From assembly GCA_003693705.1 (NCBI GenBank), contig RBZT01000588.1, positions 1-64,000 of the forward strand: DNA of 64,000 nt, in the 5' to 3' direction. The notes beneath the pieces were generated by a model, which saw only the letters and a program-made list of their open reading frames with translations, ran no database searches and was not told the origin of the DNA. Position 1 is the first letter of the stretch; each line of letters begins with the position of its first letter. Source of the DNA: Polymyxa betae A26-41 (taxonomy: Eukaryota; Protista; Endomyxa: Phytomyxea). Shown here one piece after another: positions 10,401 through 26,993 of this stretch. The position numbers and the translations under genes were made by a program.

Positions 10401-12372
10401 GATAAAATCGTGGCAGTACGCCACTTTGCAAGCGTTCTGGAAATCCTGATCACTGGCCTCCGATCCGTTCTTCCCATACAGTAAATTCGTCCGAATTGTG
10501 CCAGTAAAAAGAGTCGGTTGCTGAAAGACGACTCCTGCACATGGTCAGTGCAATCACGAAGATCACCAAAACATTTAAGCACCGATATGTTTCCGCAACG
10601 AAGCGACATTCACCGAGCGAATATCGACGCCATCGATCGTGATTCGGCCGCTATCCGGATCGTAGAATCGATTAAGCAATTGACCGATCGTGGATTTACC
10701 ACTCCTGAAATCGAGCGATAAACAATACAGAAAGAGCCAAATTGTTCGCGTCTACCCGGTTTCACCAACCAATGCACAAGATGTTCCAGGTGGGATGGTC
10801 AGATTCAGGTTGTCCAAGATCTTCTGATTCGGTCGTGTCGGATACGAGAAGCACACATTCTCGAATTTGATTTCGCCTCGTACAGGGACTGATAGCGTGG
10901 TACCTAAATAGCCGAAACAAACTCAGCTAAACATTCATCGAACTCTCCCTTCATACCGGTCTCGTCCAGCGGATCAATTTTCGATTTCCTTTTGATAACA
11001 GCCCAGATCCCAGGTGCACATCCGATACCGCCCGTGATATTGGTCACAGATGGACCCATTTGCCCTGAAATAAATCAGCGACAAGGTTTGTTACGACCAC
11101 AGGCCACACAAACCAAGGCCGAATGCTCCCATTAGGACTGAGAAGAATACCGCCAGAACTTGGCCCTGGCTGTATTTTCCGATAGCAATCATATGACCAC
11201 CGAACCATAGAGCACCGCCATCTAAAATGATTCATGAACTGCAATGAACCCCAGACCCCGCAGTGGATTCATACAGGTTAAGAACATAGTTCCCCACATT
11301 GCGCCAATCGACATTCCAACCATGAGGCCTTTTCGAATGCCCGACTGGGCAGCAGATTCCAGTTTGGACGAGAACCTGTTTAGTTCTCGATCCTGAGATC
11401 TGAAGATCTTGACAGTTCGAATGGCAGAGAGCACCTAGAGAAAGTTTTAAATAAGCAGAATTGTATAAATGACGAGGATTTAGGACCTCTTCGGAAACGC
11501 TACCAGCCGAAGCGAAGGCTTCGCGGCTATCGGAATTGTCCTTCTTTAGATACTTGCCAAAGATTGTGGCTGTGACAGACAATACAGGGACCGAGCATAG
11601 AATCACGAGAGTGAGCTCCCAGCCTTTGTAGAGCCCAACTCCCAACCCGCCAATAAACATCGCAATAAACTGAAAACAGTTGCCGACGTTTTGCCCTAAA
11701 GCGTCCCGAACCTGTCGCCGTTATTGGGACGAAAACGTGAATCCTTTCCAGGAACCTACCTGCGATATATCGGCTCCAATGCGCGTCGACAACATGCCGG
11801 GCTCCTGGCTGTCGTACCAGCCCACGTCCTGTCGCAGAAGCGACGACAGATAGAGACGGCGGAGACGAAAGCCCTGACGATCGGCGGCCGTGGCCCATCC
11901 GGTCACCTGACAATCTGTTGAATGAAGGCACGAACGATGAATGATGCACCGAGATGAACGAAAACAATCAGTTTGAATGAAAATCGGAGCCTTTGCCGCT
12001 GACCTGCAACCAGGATCCGACGAATGACACGACACCGACGAGAACGATGTCGGTCGCCTTCTTCGTCACCTGGCGATGGAAGTCGTCGGGCGAGCTGGTG
12101 CCTCCGAACGACCCGAATAGATCGCCGAAAAGCAGCGAAAACGCTGCCGTTTTCTCAATTCAACCATTACAAATGAAAAGAAACTCGAAGAGACCTGGTA
12201 GGCATAGACCGTTGACAATGCCGCCGAGGGTCCCGACGATCATCAATATACAATCCAGTCGGTCAGCGAATTCAAACATGCTGAGATACGAAACTGGGGG
12301 ATCGGGCGGCCTGGACGCCTTGGTGTCGTCGGCCGGATTCTCGGCCATCTGGACGACAACATGATTGTCCAT
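7412..12372 (-). CDS. Full-length ABCB/MDR (P-glycoprotein-type) ABC transporter, many introns
   Basis: [24 protein letters not shown], Walker A GETGSGKST and GPSGSGKT, signatures LSGGQKQR and LSGGQRQR, Walker [13 protein letters not shown], and two AHRL H-loops. TMD-NBD-TMD-NBD order. Confidence 0.95.
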
Positions 12373-12729
12373 AATGACGCCTATTAGAAATGGCAGGAGC
12401 TATAAAGACACAATAGGTTACTATTGCCATGTCAGTGAGTGACAGAAACAAACAACGCATCCGTGCATGACGACGCAGTTCGCTCTGGGACCTGAATGAT
12501 GAGTTCGAGTTATCTGGGTGGCGGGAACCATCCCGACCCGACTTGCATGCAGGGAAGTCACAGAATTTTCTAGGGAATGTTGACCCAGAGGCTGCAAGAC
12601 CGCCTAACCGATTAAGAGCTGGGTTGCGGCGCGACAGATTTCGAGGGCGACATCTATCCAGCTTGAGGATGGGAATAAAAAAACAAGATGGAATATGTAT
12701 TAATCGATTTGATACAAGAGTAATGCTGA

Positions 12730-14257
12730 CTACGAAGACATCAGTTCCGGGCCGGTGGCTTCCAGATAGATGACAGCTTCATGAACCTTCTCAGTCCAGG
12801 TATTCAATTGGGTCCTAAGACTTTCCACCTGAACAAGAACGTTCAGGGAATACTGAACCATCAGAGGATAAGAATCGTGTTCCGACCTGCTGCATATTAA
12901 GAACACGAGGCTGGACACGTTTGATTCGAACAATTTGGACCACTTGGTCGATGACGCCTTGAATGACGCCAAGAGACATCGCTTTCATCAACAGCAACTC
13001 AACCTAAATTGGCGATGAATGCAACAACGAACGAAGTCGTCATAAAGATGAACCTCATCGATCGTTATCTGGCAAATCTTCGAGATTTCGTCGAATTTGA
13101 TGTTCCGATCGTTGCTGGGCCGCTTGAACACCATCTCCATCAAGTTCATGATGCGAATCTTTTGACGAAGGAATGCGGCGTTGTTGCTCAGAATGGGCTG
13201 TGAACCGCTGTTTTGCTTATAAAGCGCTTCGAACTTTTCAATTGAGCCCTTTGCGATAGTTTACAATGTGTAGTAAAGCTGAGCTGCTTCAGCATACCTG
13301 ATCGAATGCATTGAGCATGTCATTGATCCACTGGTGAGAAGTGCCCTTAAGAGAGTTCAGAATGGGATGCTGTAAAAGTTCACCAAAATTGTATTGGTCA
13401 TCGGACGCCAAAGCAGACAGACCAAGATTGCTGCTTAACTCAACCTGAAAACGTTCGTTAATACAGCCAGCAGAAACCAGATTGTAGCATACTTGTTGCT
13501 GCAATGGGATGTTTTCCAGAGGAGTGTATGACAGGTATAAAATCGCATTCCGGAAGAATTCAGCAGCGGTACCGACGACCTATTGGCGTCAATCAACTTG
13601 AAGAAGCAGAAGCCTTGGTCGCCGTACTTTATGATATTCCATTTTAACTTGGAACAGACGGCTCGGGATAATGGCGGGAAGCTCGGCCGGGTAAGAATCA
13701 AGTCCAGATTGAGCTTCCTCGAGACGGGCGTGGCATCCAGGGTGGTCTCCTTTCAACAATACCCAGGATGCTCTAAACAAAATGTTTCAAGGAGAGATAT
13801 ATCGTAGATACACGAGATGCAATACAGTTCCAGTTTCAGGAGCAGCGAAGGGCCAAATTCATTTTTTACTAGACTTGTCTTTGACTCGACAAATTCTATC
13901 TTCGATTGGATATCTACAAAACATCAGATCCTGATTCACCTGAAAGAAGTAGCAACCTTTAATCTGATGTGAAGCTTCAAAAACAATTTGCACCAAAGTT
14001 AACGGGTCGATTTCTTTAGCGCATTTTGAAACAAAATCGTTATATAATTTCAGAGTATTCTGGTCGGCGTTGAAATAGCCGGTCTTGATCGCTTCTGATA
14101 GTTTACAGCCTAGCTGATGCCATAATCTACAGCAGACTAAACTACAGCGACCCACGAATCAAGACAGCACCAACTTGTTCGTGAATAATTCACCGAGTTC
14201 CTGGAATACGTTGGCCTGGGCGGGTGCAACGGCGACCTGAGCGTTGATATAATCCAT
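12730..14257 (-). CDS. PSMD13: 26S proteasome lid subunit Rpn9/PSMD13
   Basis: MDYINAQ...ELFTNK|[61 protein letters not shown]. Confidence 0.93.
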
Positions 14258-14691
14258 AATCGATGACGAAGACAGCGGCGATAAGAAGCTCAGCAGAATT
14301 GTGCGTACTTAAAGAGACTCTGAGTTGTATGAAAGCTGTGTAACATAATCATAGAGTCTTCTGCTACGAGGTATAACTGGATCGGTTTCTCGTAATGTTC
14401 GAACAATAAACACGTTATTCATAATAGAGGAAGGTGAAATTTCGTTTTGTTAGGAATGAATCTCCTTTCGTAGATTTTCATGAATTGAGGGATCATGAAT
14501 GCTATAGTGGCCTAGAAAACTTGAATGGGCTGCACGAGAATATTGTCCCTTCGTTCTCTCTTGATCCGTTAGAAGCCATGATGGATACTTGACGCAACAA
14601 CATTGTCGACGAGACATATGCAAACGAAAAATTTTACAAATGAAACGAGTAACAGGCAACTAAGAGACAAATGGACAATAATTGCACTGTA

Positions 14692-17600
14692 TTATGACAG
14701 AAGCAAATGCGATTGGGGTTGCGATTGCCATCGCAAAATGCCGCCATCCACGTCCATGATGCTGTTCCCAGAAGCACGTTTTTGGACCAACCTTTGAATT
14801 TCTTCTTCAACAGTAGACACAGGTCCCATTATCCTTTCACTTAAGAAAGAATTTGACTCAGAAACAACATTAGCGCTCTCCAATGACCTGAAATGGATTT
14901 TCTTATTAACCAGAAGCAAAGCTTTGTGATAAAAAATACTGACCCGCGGATACGGCCAATTTCCTGTAAATAGTCTGGAAGATAAGGCGACATTCCTGCG
15001 GTCGAACGAATATGATACGTTGTGAAGTCGATCAGAATGAAAAGGCAATGCTCCAAAATGAACCTAGCGCATCATATGAAAATCGCCCAGACATCCGTTG
15101 CATGAAAACCCACCTATGCATCTGATCGAACATAACATTTCCCTCTTTGATTGGGCGGGTGACACTTTGTACTGTGTTGACGCAATAGTCGATGAGATCG
15201 ACAACAAAACTAATGGGTAAAGGAAATCCAGAGTCGGGATCAGAGCGTGCCGTTAAGTCGAACGAGAATAGATCGGTCAAATTTCGAGCCTAGACAAACA
15301 GAAAATTAAACAGCGGTCGAGAAGCAATATCGACAAATGCACCTGTTGCGAGCGAATAAAAGCTAAAGGAATAGAGATTGACTGCAAAGCAAGCGATTGC
15401 TCTCGACCAAAATTCTGAGGTGGTGAATACATAGCGGATGTCACTTGTCGAGACAGCGCGACACACGTCTGACAAAGAACACGTCGCTGTTCCTGAATAA
15501 TGCTGGTAGGCATTTCTCGAAAGCGACCTTGAATGTGCCCTATTTGAACATTGATATGAATATCAGATCTGAAACAGATATAGATACAATGTGCTCAGAA
15601 AACGAAAAGAATGAAAGTTGTTAGAAACCAGTTACCAATTTCGTAGCAGAACATGAAGCATCGCTGCACTTTTAGAAGGTTGTCGATATTCAATGGTGAC
15701 TCTAGATTGCATTGAAGCTGATTCCGGAAGACAACAGCGAACTCAACAATTTGTCGATGTAGCAAAGGTGATCTGGCAAGAATGTGTCAGAACAAATAAG
15801 CAGGAGACGCCGTATAGTTACATAGGTGACGTTACAACCAAGGCTGTGGCAATATCCAAGATCAGGCCCCAGATATCCGAATGTCGGCGCATCACTTCCG
15901 CTATCGATGAGCGAAGCCAGCTGTTGCTGATTGTGGATAAAACTCCGATCGACAATAGAATGTCGCTACAAGACGAGATATAAGTATAAAGGGAGCGGAG
16001 TGAAGAACGGAAGGGGTACCTTCCCTTTGGATGAACACTGATCGACATCACGAACATGAGGAAAATCTTCAATCGAGAATAGCTGTCCCCGGGGCTTCCA
16101 GCACGGGTTGGGGATAAGAAATGCGACGATAACGATTGAACCGCATTAATAATCTAAGCACGAAGTCGTAAGAAAACGGACCGCATCAAAGAGAAATCGA
16201 ACCTCGTTGGCAGCACTCAGCGAGCTGCATTGAATTAAGCCAGGAAGCTGCCGAGCGATAAACCCAGTCTGATCGAAAGCCGCCAGACGGGCTCCAATCC
16301 GAACAACAGTATCGGCCCAAAATGGAGGCAGAGAAACGTCACCCGATCCTGCCTCTTGACCACGATTGTAATGCCTGATCGCCTGAAGATTAAATACAGA
16401 CAGAATCGAATCGCAGATCAGCGCATAAACCGGCAGCTCTGGGCTGCGAATTCGTGAGCACGTTTCAACAGCATCTAAAACCACCGATTGATTCAGAAAA
16501 CGACGGATGGGAGTGGAAAAATTGAGGAAAAAAAAGCAGCGAAGACCAAACAGGCAAACAGCATTACCAGTGTGAAGCTGCAAGGCTTGCATTAACGCTG
16601 AGAGGTTGTCCTCACTAAGCGGAGATGAGCAGTGGTAGGCGATGGCAGCCAGCAACAGAGCTGCATCCTTAACGACCGACAATGGGATCCCTTCTAAAGA
16701 GAGAACATTGGCGGCCAGGACAGAGCGATGCTGAATGCGCATTTCCTCAGTAAATGTCGTCGCAGCGTTCAGTAAGACCGAATTCAGGAAGAGTTTCCAT
16801 TTAGTGACGCAGCACGACTGTGCGTTACGGACGGCAACAGACAACGACGCCCATTGCTCCGGAGTCGGCAATAAATCATGAAGCCAGGCATCGAATGGCA
16901 GGCTCGAAACCAGTGACAGACCGGTTGCAGGGTCATTAGCGTAAACGAGCTCGATCGACAAGATCTGAAAGGCATGCGACCTAAGCGAGCAGAATTAGAA
17001 ATAATACCATCAAAAATGGTGTTTGGAAGTACCGCACTTGCAAAGACGCAAGTCGAGCCATTTCCGAGTCGACCGGAATGGGATTGCTAAGCGCAAATGC
17101 AATGTTCGACCAGAACGTCTCCCCGAATTCTTGGACGACGCGATCAGCGATCATGGAAGTCGTTGTGGAGCGATATTGAACAGCAGCGACCCACAGCTGA
17201 GCAAATACAGACAGAGCCTAGAACAATTCAGGGACATTTGAAAATAAGCAATCTGGACAAAAGCGACTTTTTCGAAAACGACGGGATCGTCGCGTTTCTG
17301 GACCATTAACTCGTGCAGTGGTTTAATCAGATTCGTCTCAGAGTCGCTGGACTGAGAGAGCAATCGCTCAGCCAATCCAGGCTGGTACTTCAGCGCCGTA
17401 ACGATGAATTCCACAGCTGAATTCTGCAGAAAAACGACATCTAGAGCCAATAAGCGACCTACGAACAAGGCATCAGATTCGTGACATTCAGATCAGACGA
17501 CACCGTACAGCATTGACTCTTCAGGTCGACGACACGAGACTGGCTCAGGAGGCCAGCAACGGTAACAACGGGACGATCCATCAGCGAAGATAGTACGACC

Positions 17601-20444: not shown

Positions 20445-21073
20445 ATGAATCAGGTAATACAGAAATCTGGCAACGCTTGTACCAACTGGACCGCGTTCAG
20501 CATTGTAGAAATTTTGGAACGCTGTTAAGACTAAGATCAACTGGGAATTGAAAATATCGGAAAAACAGAGAAATATTGTGGCATCAAGAAAATCTTTTGC
20601 CGGTTGGGATGCTTTGAATTGGATTGGATTCGATGACTTTGTTGGTATCAACGGGCGGTGCGATATCAATAACACAGGACCTGAGGTACGCCGGTTTATC
20701 GCGTTTTGTGTTTCTCAGGAGCTCCTATTTCTGTTCTCAGAGCTGCCATGATTCACCCATTGGTTGGGATGCATTGCAGTCCCTCGATAACTGGAAAAAC
20801 AAATTCGAGAACGACGCCCCGATTCGCTACTGTTTCCCAACCAGGGGTAAGCACAACATGCTTATTCCTGGTTCGAATGAACCGATGGGACGAAACAAGG
20901 CTCAATGTTCAATGCTAAATTGCGAAAATATGCAATTCGTCAGCTTGATATACCTATGGCAAACTAAAGACAATGACTTCGCGCTTTATTTTGTGCTGTC
21001 CAAAATCGAATTGAACAATTTGTCTGGAAGTACAAGAGAGCACACATTCTGTTACGATTTGAAGCGAAAATAA
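20445..21073 (+). CDS. Small spliced hypothetical protein (two GWDAL motifs)
   Basis: Plausible GT-AG splicing gives MNQ|KFWNAVKTKINWELK...FAGWDALNW...GPE|SCHDSPIGWDALQSLDNW. No family recognised; 3' end uncertain. Confidence 0.35.
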
Positions 21074-21128
21074 AAATCCATATCACAGCTCTCGGAATTT
21101 ATTTTTGGCGTCTTAAACAGTCTATTAA

Positions 21129-23663
21129 TTATATATTCAAAGACATAATGCGATCTATATATCCTGGCCTTGAGGAATGGGCAATAATCCCAAGGACGCA
21201 AAGATCCTCAATTGCTTGAAGGAATCTTGCCTGCAGCTGAACCTCATTCGTCTTCTTATTATTCATACATTTGAATTTGCTGAAGATACTGCCATAATCC
21301 ACAGATATGCTTGGTGCTTCACATACATACTGGTACACCTTCAGTATATCCAGTTCGGGATGGTCGCAAAGGCTTTTTAGAAGGAACGCTTCAATATTAT
21401 CGATACTTAACTGCATCGGAAAGTGAATCAGGATGGGAATGATACGTTCAGAAAAGGGAATGCTACCTTCTCCAAAGCATTGGCATCATCGAAGAGAAAC
21501 TGGGTGGATCCTGGAAGCTTTGAAAGATGTGGCAGCTTCTCGTGAATAAAATCGCTCAAAAACTGTGACAGCCTTGCACTAACAGCGTTAACTGATGGAG
21601 CAGAAACCTTATCGGGAAGTGCTTGCAATAGACGCCTGAAGCACCGTTCAATGAGGAAAGAAAAACAAGAACGAGTGATCAACAGACTTAGAAACACGAC
21701 TGGACGCCTTGACAGAAGTGACCACAGTCGGTTGAGTGGTTTCGAGGTTGTCAAAATTATCGAGCAAATATTGCATCTGTTGCGCTTCCTTTTCCATCTG
21801 TGAATTAAACAGAATGTCATGCCAAAGGTTCAGCGTCTTTGTCAATGCTGGTCTGCTCCGACAAGTATTTAAACAATGCAGCAACTGGAAAATCGGGCCT
21901 TCACTGCTTCTCTTCGGATCAAAGCCTTGCACCGAAAAGAATCTTTCCAGGGGGGTTGTCAGACCCCCCATTGACAGGGACTTCTCGTTGGCAGTCCAGG
22001 TGTTATCCAGTAAATCGCAAAAAATTGAGAAAGCCTTCCAGCAATTTTCCCGAGTGATTTTCGACTTCGCCAGAGATTTTAGCTTCGGTTTACCGCTAAG
22101 GAATAGCATTACACCCGTCTTGATCTGGTGGCCCAAAACCCGCAAAGATTGGTTGGCGTCATCAAATCTACGCTGAAGATAACGAACAACATCAGGGCCG
22201 AATTGCACTGGCAGACGACAGCTGAGCAGAAGTTCCTGTAGAGCCTTATGAGCATGCTGAGACCGAATTGAGAATTCCCGAATTGTCAAGAATCTCGTTG
22301 TTTGAGCAAACAGAAATTCGTTCAGAATGGCAGCATGCGACGACACTCCAAGAACCAGAACGATATTGGTGATGCTGGTCAATCGGTGAATGACATTATT
22401 GACCAACGTCTGATCGAGACATTCAATACTATCGATGACAACGGCAAGCGGCGTCTGCGACGAAATCTTCGTTAAAACATCTTCCGGTCGAGGCGCCGTT
22501 TTACGTAGAACCTTCACCGAGCCGACGATGTTCCACAGACAATCAACAACACTGGTAGAGTTCTGTAGAAGACCGACTTGGTAGCCTCTACTAATAAGGA
22601 ACTGGCGAAGGCGCTCGAAACGCAACCCGTTATCAGAGCGGTCGATGCCTGTGGCGATCACGGCCGTTGGAAGCGAATGCGAGGGCGCCCGTATAAACTC
22701 GAAAACCGATTCAAAAAGTTCAGAATTCGAACGGGCAATTTGGTTGGCGATAACTTCATCAATCGTCTTCGACACATCATCAAGCAGATTGATAGCCTCC
22801 GTATTGAATGCAGAAGTCGCCTTGCCTTTACTCTGAGCGGGACGGAACTGCACCGAGTCGTGCAGCGAAATGGAAAGACGATCCTCACCATTATCATCAT
22901 CGTCGTCACATATCTCATCATCACTTGTTATACAGGTATCGACAGAATCCGACTCGAACTCTTCTTCGTCTTGGCTCATTGGATCGTCATTCTCATACTC
23001 GCCCGCAGATGAACAACATTCGTCCGAGATGACCATGGGCAATGCGATTCTCTCCTCAAGGCATCCGGCAGTAATGCTGGCTCGGGCTCGCCGCTTAGCC
23101 AATCTGGCAGTCTTGCCATTGACGATTGCCACACTGCAATCGTCAATCGCCGACACCGGCGATGGCGGAGCACTAGCTTCGATTACCATACTGGAGTCGT
23201 CACGCATTGATAACCTTCGCGAAGGCGGCCCGTGATCTTGGCACAAATACTGGAAGCCGGATTGTTGTTTTTGGAGAGATTCTTCCACCAAAGCGCACGA
23301 GGGATGGCACCGCCTTGGACAGCCCTTCGTTGAGCACTTCAACAAGATGCCTTGAGAATTCATGCAACTGATGCATTCAAAGGTCTTAGATCGTCGCCCG
23401 CCAGCAGATAAACAGACAGAATGGGACCAAGAGCCTTCTTCCGTTTGCATAACCGGCTGCCATTTCGCCGACGTCTTATCCCACAATACCAGGCATCGAT
23501 CGCATTTGTGGGCTTCTATTCCCTCCTTGCATGTGTCACATTCGAACGCCGCTTTTCGAGACGCGGCCGGATAGCAACCCCTATGAACAGAGACTGTACA
23601 GGTTCGGCAACGGCGAATGGGCCCGGCCTTACTTCCACAAACAGCACATCGTGGCAAGGCCAT
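21129..23663 (-). CDS. ORC3: Origin recognition complex subunit 3 with N-terminal PZP (PHD-Zn knuckle-PHD) module
   Basis: ORC3 motifs LPTAVIATGIDRSD, PLAVVIDSIECLD, IVLVLGVSS, LPVQFGPDVVRYL and winged-helix end QARFLQAIEDLCVLGII. Residues 6-144 carry a full C4HC3 + C2HC + C4HC2H ligand set. Two short 3' introns (first 21636-21687). Confidence 0.88.
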
Positions 23664-24673
23664 GTCCTCAACGAAGAAGACGAGGAGGCCGCACTCCGTC
23701 GCTCAAATCACCATCGTCAAAGCGTGCAAGTCTTCCCACTTCTCAGCTGGCTGGCTGAATGAGCTTCCAACAGCTTGCATATACCGGGCTTGGAGAAGTA
23801 ACTTCAAATCAATGACTGAGCAAGCACCTGAATTTATTTTTGTCTCAGCTTGTTTTTGAATTCGATTTGATTCGGCTAGTTTGCCGATCTTTGGTCAACA
23901 GGAGGAGCCAAAATCAGCCTGTTTCGTATCTTTAACAGTATCTGGCAACTGATTGAAAATTGTGTTTATATGAAGATAGGCCTTATGCTGCAACAAAGTA
24001 ATTGAAAGAATAAATGATGACATTGAAGCCAGAGACGTAGACTTGATGTCACTCATTGGTGATCCATATTTGTATCTGTAGAGTGCAGCCGCACGAGCTT
24101 CAATCGGAAGTGAACTGCGATAGTATATTTTTGCTCTGTAAGGAGCAATTCTGGGAGCAAGAACAAACGGCGTTTTGAAATAAAGAAAAAATGTATTTCA
24201 TCACAAGTTTCGGCAGATGGAAACGCCAAACTGCTCGTTGTACAGCAAATTGCGATAGCTCTCGTTGTACCACAGATTGTCAAAGAGGTGCTTCTCTTTC
24301 ATGATCTTTTATGCGGTTTTAAGTTCGTCGCTGGGCGATCTTCAGGTCTCACAAAAGTCACAAGATGATACTATGCTGATCCCTTCCAGTTTATCGTATC
24401 ACGCATGCTTGAAAATCAAGTTTATCATGGGGACAGGCTTGAGAAACGACGATGCCATCTGAAAACATATGCAAAAACAAAACATTTGCGTGCGCAAGTA
24501 TCTGAAAACTGTTGCGCGTTTTTGTTACTTTTCCTGAAATGACCTTCGCAGTCTTTTTCCAAACTTCCAATTCGCTTTCGCAAATTCGGATTGTGCTTTT
24601 TCTGTTACCGAGTCGCTCCTAAAGCCGTCATTACTGTTTACACGCTGTCATTTCCGTATGCTTTAAGAGAATC

Positions 24674-26993
24674 ATGCAGATCCCAAACGATCACGAGAGC
24701 TCTAATAGTCGATCCGGCCATCCTCATCTGAACGATTCTTATAGCTCGTTCGACCAATTTCCTCTTTGGGAGGAACCTGACGATCGCTCGCTTCGAAATC
24801 TGTTCTATGGCCGATTCGAGCGAGGTGTCAAAGGAATGCAGCGAATTTTTCGCTGGCCTTTCCTCCTTTTTTTCTTCACAATTATCTTTATTGAACTGAT
24901 TCTCTACTTTGTTTTACGAGCTGTGATTTATGCTTATGAGACATTAATGTCTCGCTTATTCGATACGCATCATGCTGATCTGGTTGCGTTGGAGGAAGCT
25001 AAGACTTACAAGGTCAGAATTATTTTCTCATTTCATTGCTTCTCTGAATTGTTCAGGACTGGCTTGATCGAGCTAAGCGTTTAGATTCCGAAATGGACCA
25101 CGATTTCTACAAGGCGATTGATCAGTCACCGTTTTATTCATGGAAAACGGTTAAAACCATGACTAGGCAGTTGACGGCCAGCGCGAATGCGTTTCAACAA
25201 ACCCCAAATCGTCGTACGATTCTAGAACTGGAGATGCGTCTGGGTCGATCGTATAACGCCAATACTGCCAGTCTTGGTATTGATAGCGAACGTCTCTATG
25301 CTGAAACTTTTGCTGGTTGTTGACTTTTTCTTCCTGACGCACAATTTTTTATAATCGTTTTCACAGGAACAAAGAACATTCTGCAACGATATATCGATAC
25401 TGTGTTAGAGGCGACGAATCTGGTATGGAGAGCTGACTTATATAGTTAGAAGTTTGTAATGCGTCTCCAGTATATTGGTGCGGATGAGAAGATCATTCCT
25501 ACAGAGCGGAAACTAGAGAATGTGACCCGATGGAAAGCCACCTTTGGACGTACCGCTCTTTGCTTGAGTTCTGGTGGCACTATTGCGTATTACCATTTTG
25601 GTGTTGTTCGCGCTCTACTTCGCTGTGGAAGACTTCCACAGATTATATGTGGCAGGTAACCTACTTGATTGTTTTCAGTATTCGAGCTTTCACTGAGTGA
25701 CCTAATTGTGGTCTTAGCTCTGGGGGAGCGTTGGTAGCTGCCGTTATTGGAACAAGAACAGATCAAGAACTTGAGAATATTCTGACTCCTGACATCCATA
25801 AGTATCTAAGTTGCTGTAGGGACTCATGGGGAACCATCCTCTCGTAGGTTCCTCGGTCTGTGCTGATATCGATGTGTTTATTCGACGCAGGCGTTTTTTT
25901 CTGAACAATAAGCTGTTTGATGAAAAGCAATGGAGACAAATATCTGGTGATTTGCTTTTCGATGACATGACCTTCAAAGAAGCCTATAAAAAAACAGGTC
26001 TATTTTTTATGTTGGTGTTTAGTTTCAAATTCTAATTTCTGCTTTTAGGCCGCATTTTATGCATAACCTGCACGAGCGACAACAAATGGGGCGCACCAAT
26101 TGTTTTGTGAGTAAAGTAGCCAAATTGATAGTACATGCACTCATGATATCATGGGTTAGAAATTACATGACGACGCCATCGGTTGTCATTCGAGATGCAG
26201 TCCTGGCGAGCTCTGCGATTCCGCCCCTTCTTTCTCCTATAACGCTCATGTGTAAAACTGCTAGAGGAAGCATCCAGGTTGCTAACATGTCTGCTTGCCT
26301 ATCTATATCTTACGATCCTCTTCAGCCTTTTGTCGACTTTGGCAAATGCTGGTCTGATGGTGCCATTAAGAACGATATTCCATCCAAACAGCTTGCTGAA
26401 CAATTCAACGTCAATTACTTAATAGTGAGCCAGGTCCGTTGCATCATCAAAATTTCCATTTTGCTACGAATTCAGAGAGTAGTTTCCTGAGTGCGAATTC
26501 TAGGTAAATCCTCATATTGTCCCTTTCGTATATGAGTGTCGAGGATCACCTGGATGTCCAACCCGGCGATATGGAAGTGGATTACGCGGGGGATTTCTAT
26601 TCAGCGCCACCGAGGCTCTGTTGAAGCTCGATATGCGAAAATGGATGCGAATGATTTCCGAATTGGATTTGATGCCCATGGTCTTTAGCCAGGTTTGGTT
26701 TCAAATTTACGAACTCGAATGCTTTTTTTACAGTAGGACTGCAGGATTGGTCGAACTTGTTTCTTCAAAAGCATTGGGGAAATGTAACTATTTATCCAAC
26801 TAGAGGCTGGCGAGCTCTGTATGATACGGTCCTCGTGGTCACCAACCCAACATATCTTCGCATGAAACAGTATATCGAGACTGGAGAGCACTCAACCTAT
26901 CCAAAGATAGCAATGATCGCCAACCACTTCAGTTTAGAACAGACATTACTCACGGCCGAAATTAGGCTGTCCCACCAGCAAGCGCCAGTTTAA
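24674..26993 (+). CDS. Patatin-like phospholipase / triacylglycerol lipase (TGL/SDP1 family) with N-terminal TM helix
   Basis: FGRTALCLSSGG..YHFGVVRALL, nucleophile elbow GSSGG (split by an intron), MTFKEAYKKTGRIL, LNYMTTPSVVI..AVLASSAIP, WSDGA, FNVNYLIVSQVNPHIVPF. Confidence 0.93.

Follow-up and report, generated by a model that had tools for sequence, protein, structure and literature searches.

An apparently undescribed fusion of a compact PZP zinc-finger module to the origin recognition complex subunit ORC3 in Polymyxa betae

Accessory tethers that add DNA or chromatin affinity are found on several subunits of ORC, the origin recognition complex, and its partners, including the AT-hooks of Schizosaccharomyces pombe Orc4 and, in metazoan ORC1 and CDC6, disordered stretches of basic character, while the metazoan ORC3-HP1 and ORC-LRWD1 (ORCA) links connect ORC to heterochromatin. 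Here we describe the ORC3 locus of Polymyxa betae, an unculturable obligate parasite of sugar-beet roots (Plasmodiophorida, Rhizaria), in which the ORC3 sequence is preceded in frame by a PZP module, that is two PHD fingers flanking a zinc knuckle. The locus lies on the minus strand, at 21129-23663 of a 64,000-nucleotide stretch (positions 1 to 64,000 of contig RBZT01000588.1, assembly GCA_003693705.1) referred to below as the window. We consider it probable, though well short of assured, that this is a single three-exon gene encoding a compact PZP module, an acidic linker and a complete ORC3, with the PZP serving as a chromatin-anchoring arm.

In a survey of ORC across 132 eukaryotes PHD fingers were reported on the ORC1 of Chloroplastida only (PMC7058166). 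Plant and green-algal ORC1 with its BAH-PHD (Arabidopsis ORC1a/b) likewise carries a PHD-type finger N-terminal to the AAA+ domain, shuffled in from a non-ORC protein (PMC7058166). It differs from the P. betae protein in the subunit concerned, in having a single PHD inside a BAH domain and not a tripartite PZP, and in that its H3 ligand has been experimentally shown, whereas the ORC3 PZP is a predicted module with an altered H3 face. The first-pass annotation had placed the chromatin readers of ORC on Orc1 and on S. pombe Orc4 and none on Orc3. That list was incomplete, as ORC4_C (99 %), AAA (99 %) and PHD (98 %) occur together in an ESM Atlas cluster with 713 members from Ascomycota. These ascomycete proteins, for which a literature search returned no describing paper, likewise bear a PHD-type finger on a subunit other than ORC1, but in their case ORC4 bears one PHD in a fungal lineage, against a PZP on ORC3 in a plasmodiophorid.

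JADE1/2/3, BRPF1/2/3, AF10/AF17, PHF14 and yeast NTO1 share with the module its order of PHD1, knuckle and PHD2, its pattern of ligands and its fold. JADE and BRPF act as scaffolds for HBO1, an acetyltransferase that was originally identified bound to ORC and that serves in origin licensing, so that in trans the vicinity of ORC is already a place of PZP action. Compared with the JADE/BRPF group the ORC3 PZP is compact (a connector of 12 residues versus ~30), has a basic and not an acidic PHD1, lacks the EPC, bromo and PWWP partners, and is fused in cis to ORC3. The closest functional likeness to a basic PZP on an acidic leash is offered by the S. pombe Orc4 and metazoan ORC1/CDC6 extensions. 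These however are short motifs or disordered regions on other subunits, whereas the ORC3 module is a folded multi-zinc unit. With the metazoan ORC3-HP1 link the locus shares ORC3 as the point of contact between ORC and chromatin marks, but the metazoan links are indirect and use a separate reader protein, while here the reader-type fold lies within the ORC3 polypeptide itself.

The open reading frame (ORF) listing contains a frame of 671 codons on the minus strand, running without interruption from an ATG at 23663 to 21648 as first reported, while the next-longest frame around the locus reaches at most 146 codons. The open frame is real, but its final ~13 codons (ending at 21648) are intron sequence and two more exons lie in 21129-21647, giving an ORC3 product of ~808 amino acids (aa) from three exons separated by two short introns. 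Exon 1 (21688..23663, ~658 codons) covers the greater part of the ORC3 core in addition to the PZP and the linker. Introns were chosen by enumerating in-frame GT..AG pairs and comparing lengths with P0001, an ORC3 relative described below. Intron 1 (21636..21687, ~52 nucleotides, GT..CAG) has an ambiguous donor; with the one at 21687 the length equals that of P0001, and the sites at 21705, 21700 and 21697 might also serve. Exon 2 (21467..21635, 56 codons of ORC3) was placed by frame and by colinearity with P0001, intron 2 (21411..21466, 56 nucleotides, GTAGCA...GCAG, phase 0) was read directly from the sequence, and exon 3 (21129..21410, stop codon at 21129-21131) was assigned to a probable ORC3 C-terminal winged helix through its below-cut-off match to ORC_WH_C and its identity to P0001. 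Exons were searched one by one and the three-exon join was checked for frame and length. Because the PZP begins five residues past the ATG no extra 5′ coding exon is needed.

The PZP module occupies aa 1-150 (23214..23663). PHD1 (23529..23648) has its C4HC3 ligands at canonical spacing (C6, C9, C19, C22, H27, C30, C42 and C45), the zinc knuckle (23412..23504) has a C2HC set (C54, C57, H81 and C84) and the atypical PHD2 (23232..23375) a C4HC2H set (C97, C100, C110, C115, H120, C123, C141 and H144), so that every Cys and His position proposed in the first-pass annotation was correct. The Pfam families named there fared unequally. ORC3_N exceeded its cut-off, whereas with the sequence scanned alone PHD_2 (aa 19-46, 23.9 bits versus a cut-off of 28) and zf-HC5HC2H (aa 89-144, 24.5 versus 29.1) remained below theirs. 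The exhaustive phmmer scan returned three small relatives of aa 1-150, P0002, P0003 and P0004, which together with the ORC3 copy and a standalone paralogue from the same genome (L002) make up a five-member PZP family. Overall identity in the alignment of this family is 23-32 %, and every zinc ligand is invariant apart from C6, for which one member shows an offset. That the ligands are kept at ~30 % identity speaks for a PZP fold under purifying selection.

When the profile of this five-member family was compared with the PDB it matched the JADE1 PZP (E 9.8e-17), PHF14 (1e-14), AF10 (9e-10) and BRPF1 (1e-9) as well as JADE3 and NTO1, with coverage of positions 4-152 and thus of the whole module. 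The AlphaFold2 model built on the family alignment has a predicted local distance difference test score (pLDDT) of 84.1 and a predicted TM score (pTM) of 0.79. In a Foldseek search of the PDB with this model the best 16 matches were all PZP structures (TM 0.62-0.70). When the ESM Atlas was searched by shape, the matches included JADE1, PHF14, BRD1, ATX2, KDM4 and AF17 (TM 0.67-0.75 over 138-148 residues), and there were no ORC proteins among these shape neighbours. The connector between knuckle and PHD2 measures 12 residues here, 12-15 in the relatives and ~30 in JADE1, which carries ~20 extra residues at this point in the profile alignment; the long (~30-residue) connector of canonical modules is absent. 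As modelled, the N-terminal module is a genuine PZP fold belonging to a compact subfamily.

Downstream of the linker the ORC3 core in exon 1 (aa ~291-658, 21688..22793) is as recognisable as had been claimed, with Pfam ORC3_N scoring 48.1 bits against a gathering cut-off of 25 over its best stretch (aa 401-514, 22122-22463). A six-frame profile search of the genome (27,085,814 bases, 1001 contigs) identified exactly one ORC3_N locus, with 37.5 bits at 22122-22484. The exhaustive phmmer scan, which covered 1.84 billion representatives, gave a single relative for ORC3, the 722-aa protein P0001 (E 3.6e-30, 27-34 % identity). It is colinear with the P. betae protein from residue ~253 to the C-terminus, and its own match to ORC3_N spans profile positions 44-319. 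When the two proteins were combined in a profile, this retrieved Drosophila and human ORC3 chains and no others from among solved structures (E 1e-7 to 4e-6). The exon 3 ORF (21129-21416) scores 24.6 bits with ORC_WH_C, against a cut-off of 26.4 and 23.6 bits for P0001, and is 46 % identical to the P0001 C-terminus, including one nearly identical run of 18 residues; the two-sequence winged-helix profile of exon 3 and P0001 had no match in the PDB. The ORC3 insertion domain PF19675 gave no match here at E ≤ 1, and none in P0001, and the corresponding region is present in length but divergent. By these sequence comparisons the C-terminal part is a real ORC3.

The ORC3 protein is absent from the databases because the P. 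betae draft carries no annotation. Word-index searches, for which the ORF in full, its ORC3 portion and P0001 each served as query, returned nothing except P0001 itself and a clam ORC3, and metagenome scans for the genomic context of the relatives found none. An origin of the locus in a diatom or another well-sampled lineage was rejected, as orthologues are lacking. P0001 and P0002, both 2015 UniParc entries, likely come from Plasmodiophora brassicae, whose UniProt proteome holds one ORC3 in the ORC survey (PMC7058166).

As to the architecture as a whole, its claimed rarity was borne out within the searches made. There were no PZP-ORC3 proteins among the four matches of the exhaustive phmmer scan, which has a short reach for so divergent a query, and none among the sequence and structure neighbours in the ESM Atlas, where the ORC3 clusters contain no PHD family; full-text literature searches for ORC3 with PHD or PZP gave nothing relevant. 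On sequence evidence PZP-ORC3 is thus a real and apparently undescribed domain fusion. A similar fusion may exist in distant, poorly sampled lineages.

The compact PZP occurs in other settings. In P0004, from an environmental eukaryote (ENA ERZ23498369), a compact PZP (PHD_2 36 bits) is combined with a C-5 cytosine DNA methyltransferase (DNA_methylase 113 bits), an arrangement similar in logic to ADD-DNMT3 but with a PZP. Because the same subfamily is fused to a methyltransferase the compact PZP looks, from its domain combinations, like a portable chromatin-targeting unit. The standalone paralogue L002 is a 402-aa ORF on contig C162. It contains an in-frame intron (GTGAGG...CAG, 1753-1833 or extending to 1845, 81 or 93 nucleotides) at the junction of knuckle and PHD2, where the ORC3 copy has no intron. 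Derivation of the ORC3 PZP from a recent duplication of L002 was considered and rejected, the members of the family all being about equally distant (26-32 % identity). The genome also encodes a canonical double-PZP protein on contig C766 (L003, 10264-13701; zf-HC5HC2H_2 95 bits). A large minus-strand gene at ~11776-14956 of this contig has at least four extended-PHD matches, and a 749-aa ORF there comprises a canonical BRPF/JADE-like PZP plus a second PZP.

The first-pass annotation had called the module a histone reader, which holds for the PZP fold and the zinc scaffold but is less secure for the PHD1 face. Published structural work describes characterised PZPs as all binding nucleosomes, with PHD1 holding the free H3 N-terminus (PMC13483916, PMC4705663, PMC8421203). 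In JADE3 Asp221 contacts the backbone of H3 R2, and in JADE the P-E-G turn cages H3 Ala1 (PMC13483916). In the ORC3 PZP Arg20 sits where JADE3 has Asp221, after the third Cys, R-K-A aligns with the JADE P-E-G turn, and the C2-C3 loop is ~four residues shorter than that of JADE1. PHD1 has no acidic residue between C6 and E41 and carries a net charge of +5, compared with -2 to -6 in all four relatives and -5 in JADE1. The acidic surface that binds H3(1-4) in canonical modules, marked by a P-x-G turn caging Ala1 and by Asp next to the third Cys, is therefore not found. The aromatic/Tyr core positions of the PZP are conserved in the family alignment, and the module is basic overall, with a net charge of +8 to +11 (+11 over aa 1-150). 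Because PHD1 is at +5 and has Arg20 in place of Asp, canonical reading of the free H3 N-terminus by the ORC3 PZP is doubtful as judged from these residues.

Canonical reading of an H3 tail free of modifications, as by BRPF1, JADE, AF10 and PHF14, with ORC steered to origins or heterochromatin according to H3 modification state, would be in keeping with a fold and zinc scaffold that match solved PZPs, all of them H3-binding (PMC13483916, PMC8421203, PMC4705663), and with the retained aromatic/Tyr core. We nevertheless regard it as unlikely, given that the H3 tail is itself strongly basic and would have to be held by a basic PHD1 in which both contact positions are substituted and the C2-C3 loop is shortened. 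By comparison the basic patches on the knuckle/PHD2 side of the JADE1 PZP bind DNA strongly (PMC13483916). If the ORC3 PZP is a chromatin-anchoring arm, the likeliest contact would be nucleosomal or linker DNA, as with the JADE1 patches, or a non-canonical histone surface, and reading of the free unmodified H3 N-terminus would be less likely. Contact with DNA or the nucleosome is favoured because of the basic charge of the module and the reversal of its PHD1 histone face from an acidic to a basic one.

The PZP and the ORC3 core are joined by an acidic Ser/Asp-rich linker (aa 151-290, 22794..23213) with a net charge of -20, which is probably disordered, as its composition and a pLDDT below 50 from aa 149 onwards suggest. 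The first-pass annotation had argued that both modules lie in the same exon and so do not reflect a merged gene model, and this stands. They share a single exon and a single frame, and the 140 codons of the linker were stop-free in only 7 of 5000 shuffles. A PZP-only product would meet no stop codon for 2 kb. Given one exon and frame, the shuffle result, the lack of a stop for a PZP-only product and the conservation of the ligands, a translated PZP-ORC3 fusion appears the simplest reading of the sequence. An acidic stretch comparable to the linker is present at the N-terminus of P0001.

A number of points weigh against a fused protein with a chromatin-anchoring arm. The fusion has as its sole source one unannotated draft assembly. 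The lone sequence falls below the Pfam cut-offs for both PHD_2 and zf-HC5HC2H, and ligand specificity is deduced from net charge and a handful of alignment positions. No reads on the locus came from four RNA runs, which evidently do not contain the organism. The deposited model of P0001 has no PZP, this model being 5′-incomplete, and internal Met codons in the linker (Met153, 159, 210 and 229) could by their position yield a PZP-less isoform. In four small runs from 2022 (X1-X4, 59-71 million letters) 79-85 % of the sampled words of the locus (20900-24100) are present, and because this is near the exonic share of the stretch these runs may be transcript-derived.

Some of these points would also fit a PZP that lies outside the working ORC3, with transcription or translation starting inside the linker (Met153, 159, 210 or 229) and the PZP frame representing a recently captured or decaying neighbour gene or a rare isoform. 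P0001 begins at a point equivalent to the linker (Met18) and lacks the PZP. However, the first residue of P0001 is not Met and its residues 1-17 resemble a translated pyrimidine tract ending in CAG before Met18. The model was probably cut at an intron on its 5′ side, to judge from this tract, and the absence of a PZP from it is therefore weak evidence either way. A separate PZP frame would moreover stay open for 2 kb, and the intact ligands and the confident AlphaFold2 model indicate a module under selection. We rate this explanation as quite improbable, a little below canonical H3 reading.

Charge also bears on a further alternative, in which the PZP serves not in chromatin anchoring but in regulation or protein interaction, its partner perhaps being the acidic linker of the same molecule or another acidic protein. 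The charges of the module (+11 over aa 1-150) and the linker (-20) are indeed complementary, and the histone-binding face is non-canonical. Against this, every characterised PZP is described as acting on nucleosomes, and the sister fusion to a DNA methyltransferase in P0004 points to chromatin targeting, and we accordingly hold out still less for a purely regulatory role. An assembly artefact, in which two adjacent genes were fused by an indel or mis-join, could be suspected of a single draft binned from a root metagenome (PMC6328671) but is very remote given the published coverage of 225x (PMC6328671), the 79-85 % of the sampled words of the locus contained in four runs of another study, and the low odds that two genes would by chance be joined in frame across 140 codons free of stops. 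The published draft comprises 1,001 contigs and 27,085,946 bp at 45.1 % GC, is unannotated and was binned from a root metagenome at 225x (PMC6328671). The GC content per 2-kb block of the window is 42-56 %, mostly 42-50 %.

Under the favoured reading of one fused protein the PZP would be translated together with an ORC3 half that appears to span everything from the AAA+-like N-domain through to the C-terminal winged helix, and would give ORC an additional arm for chromatin anchoring, tethered by a long flexible leash. The acidic linker could also bend back onto this basic module so as to gate it.

Other ORC subunits were located elsewhere in the genome, with ORC2 on contig C328, ORC5 on C220, a short CDC6 on C729 and ORC1 on C459 (113532-116954; ORF 340-1980 of the extracted stretch L009). 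The C459 protein matches ORC1 in the PDB at 1e-22 versus CDC6 at 2.5e-12. The genome-wide profile search gave no match to ORC4_C (PF14629) at E ≤ 0.01, and ORC4 may be divergent, intron-split or missing from the ~91 %-complete draft. As to whether this ORC1 may have lost a BAH/PHD region, its N-terminus has no Pfam match to BAH or PHD even at E ≤ 10, and no Pfam match to BAH was obtained anywhere in the genome, a result subject to the search tool's own caveat. However, ORC1 retains an N-terminal extension of ~380 aa with a basic head, a Cys-rich motif and a region rich in predicted strands, and the extension is possibly BAH/PHD-like. Its Cys motif is non-canonical (C-x2-C-x8-C-x2-C-x-H-x2-C-x2-C...), its language-model features lean weakly (0.76-0.79) towards BAH/PHD clusters of the ESM Atlas, and its single-sequence AlphaFold2 model has a pLDDT of 30. 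As ORC1 keeps this extension, any route through the PZP would add to an ORC1 route and not replace it.

Upstream of the ORC3 start a spacer of ~1 kb (23664..24673) separates the locus from a plus-strand gene at 24674-26490, which diverges from ORC3; the spacer is likely a divergent promoter region. A later ORF of the plus-strand gene contains a ‘DGA...ND’ stretch which, we presume, recalls patatin-like lipases.

The problem of finding sites on the genome without a DNA consensus has been solved by ORC lineage by lineage, by the BAH of Orc1, the PHD of plant Orc1, the AT-hooks of Orc4 and the basic disorder of the animal proteins. Since the PZP proteins of the JADE/BRPF group already act at origins via HBO1, PZP-ORC3 looks like a natural cis-fusion of a PZP to ORC. 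Its basic PHD1 face poses the concrete question of whether the ligand is the H3 tail, DNA or something else. More speculatively, and in our estimate improbable though worth stating, the Orc3-borne PZP positions the plasmodiophorid ORC, perhaps with a new histone or nucleosome specificity arising from the charge-reversed PHD1, and provides a licensing route independent of Orc1 BAH, the same compact PZP subfamily being used as a general targeting cassette. The fusion extends the known theme of ORC subunits that bear chromatin or DNA anchors, and with a folded PZP on Orc3 the list of such anchors would grow by one subunit and by one kind of module.

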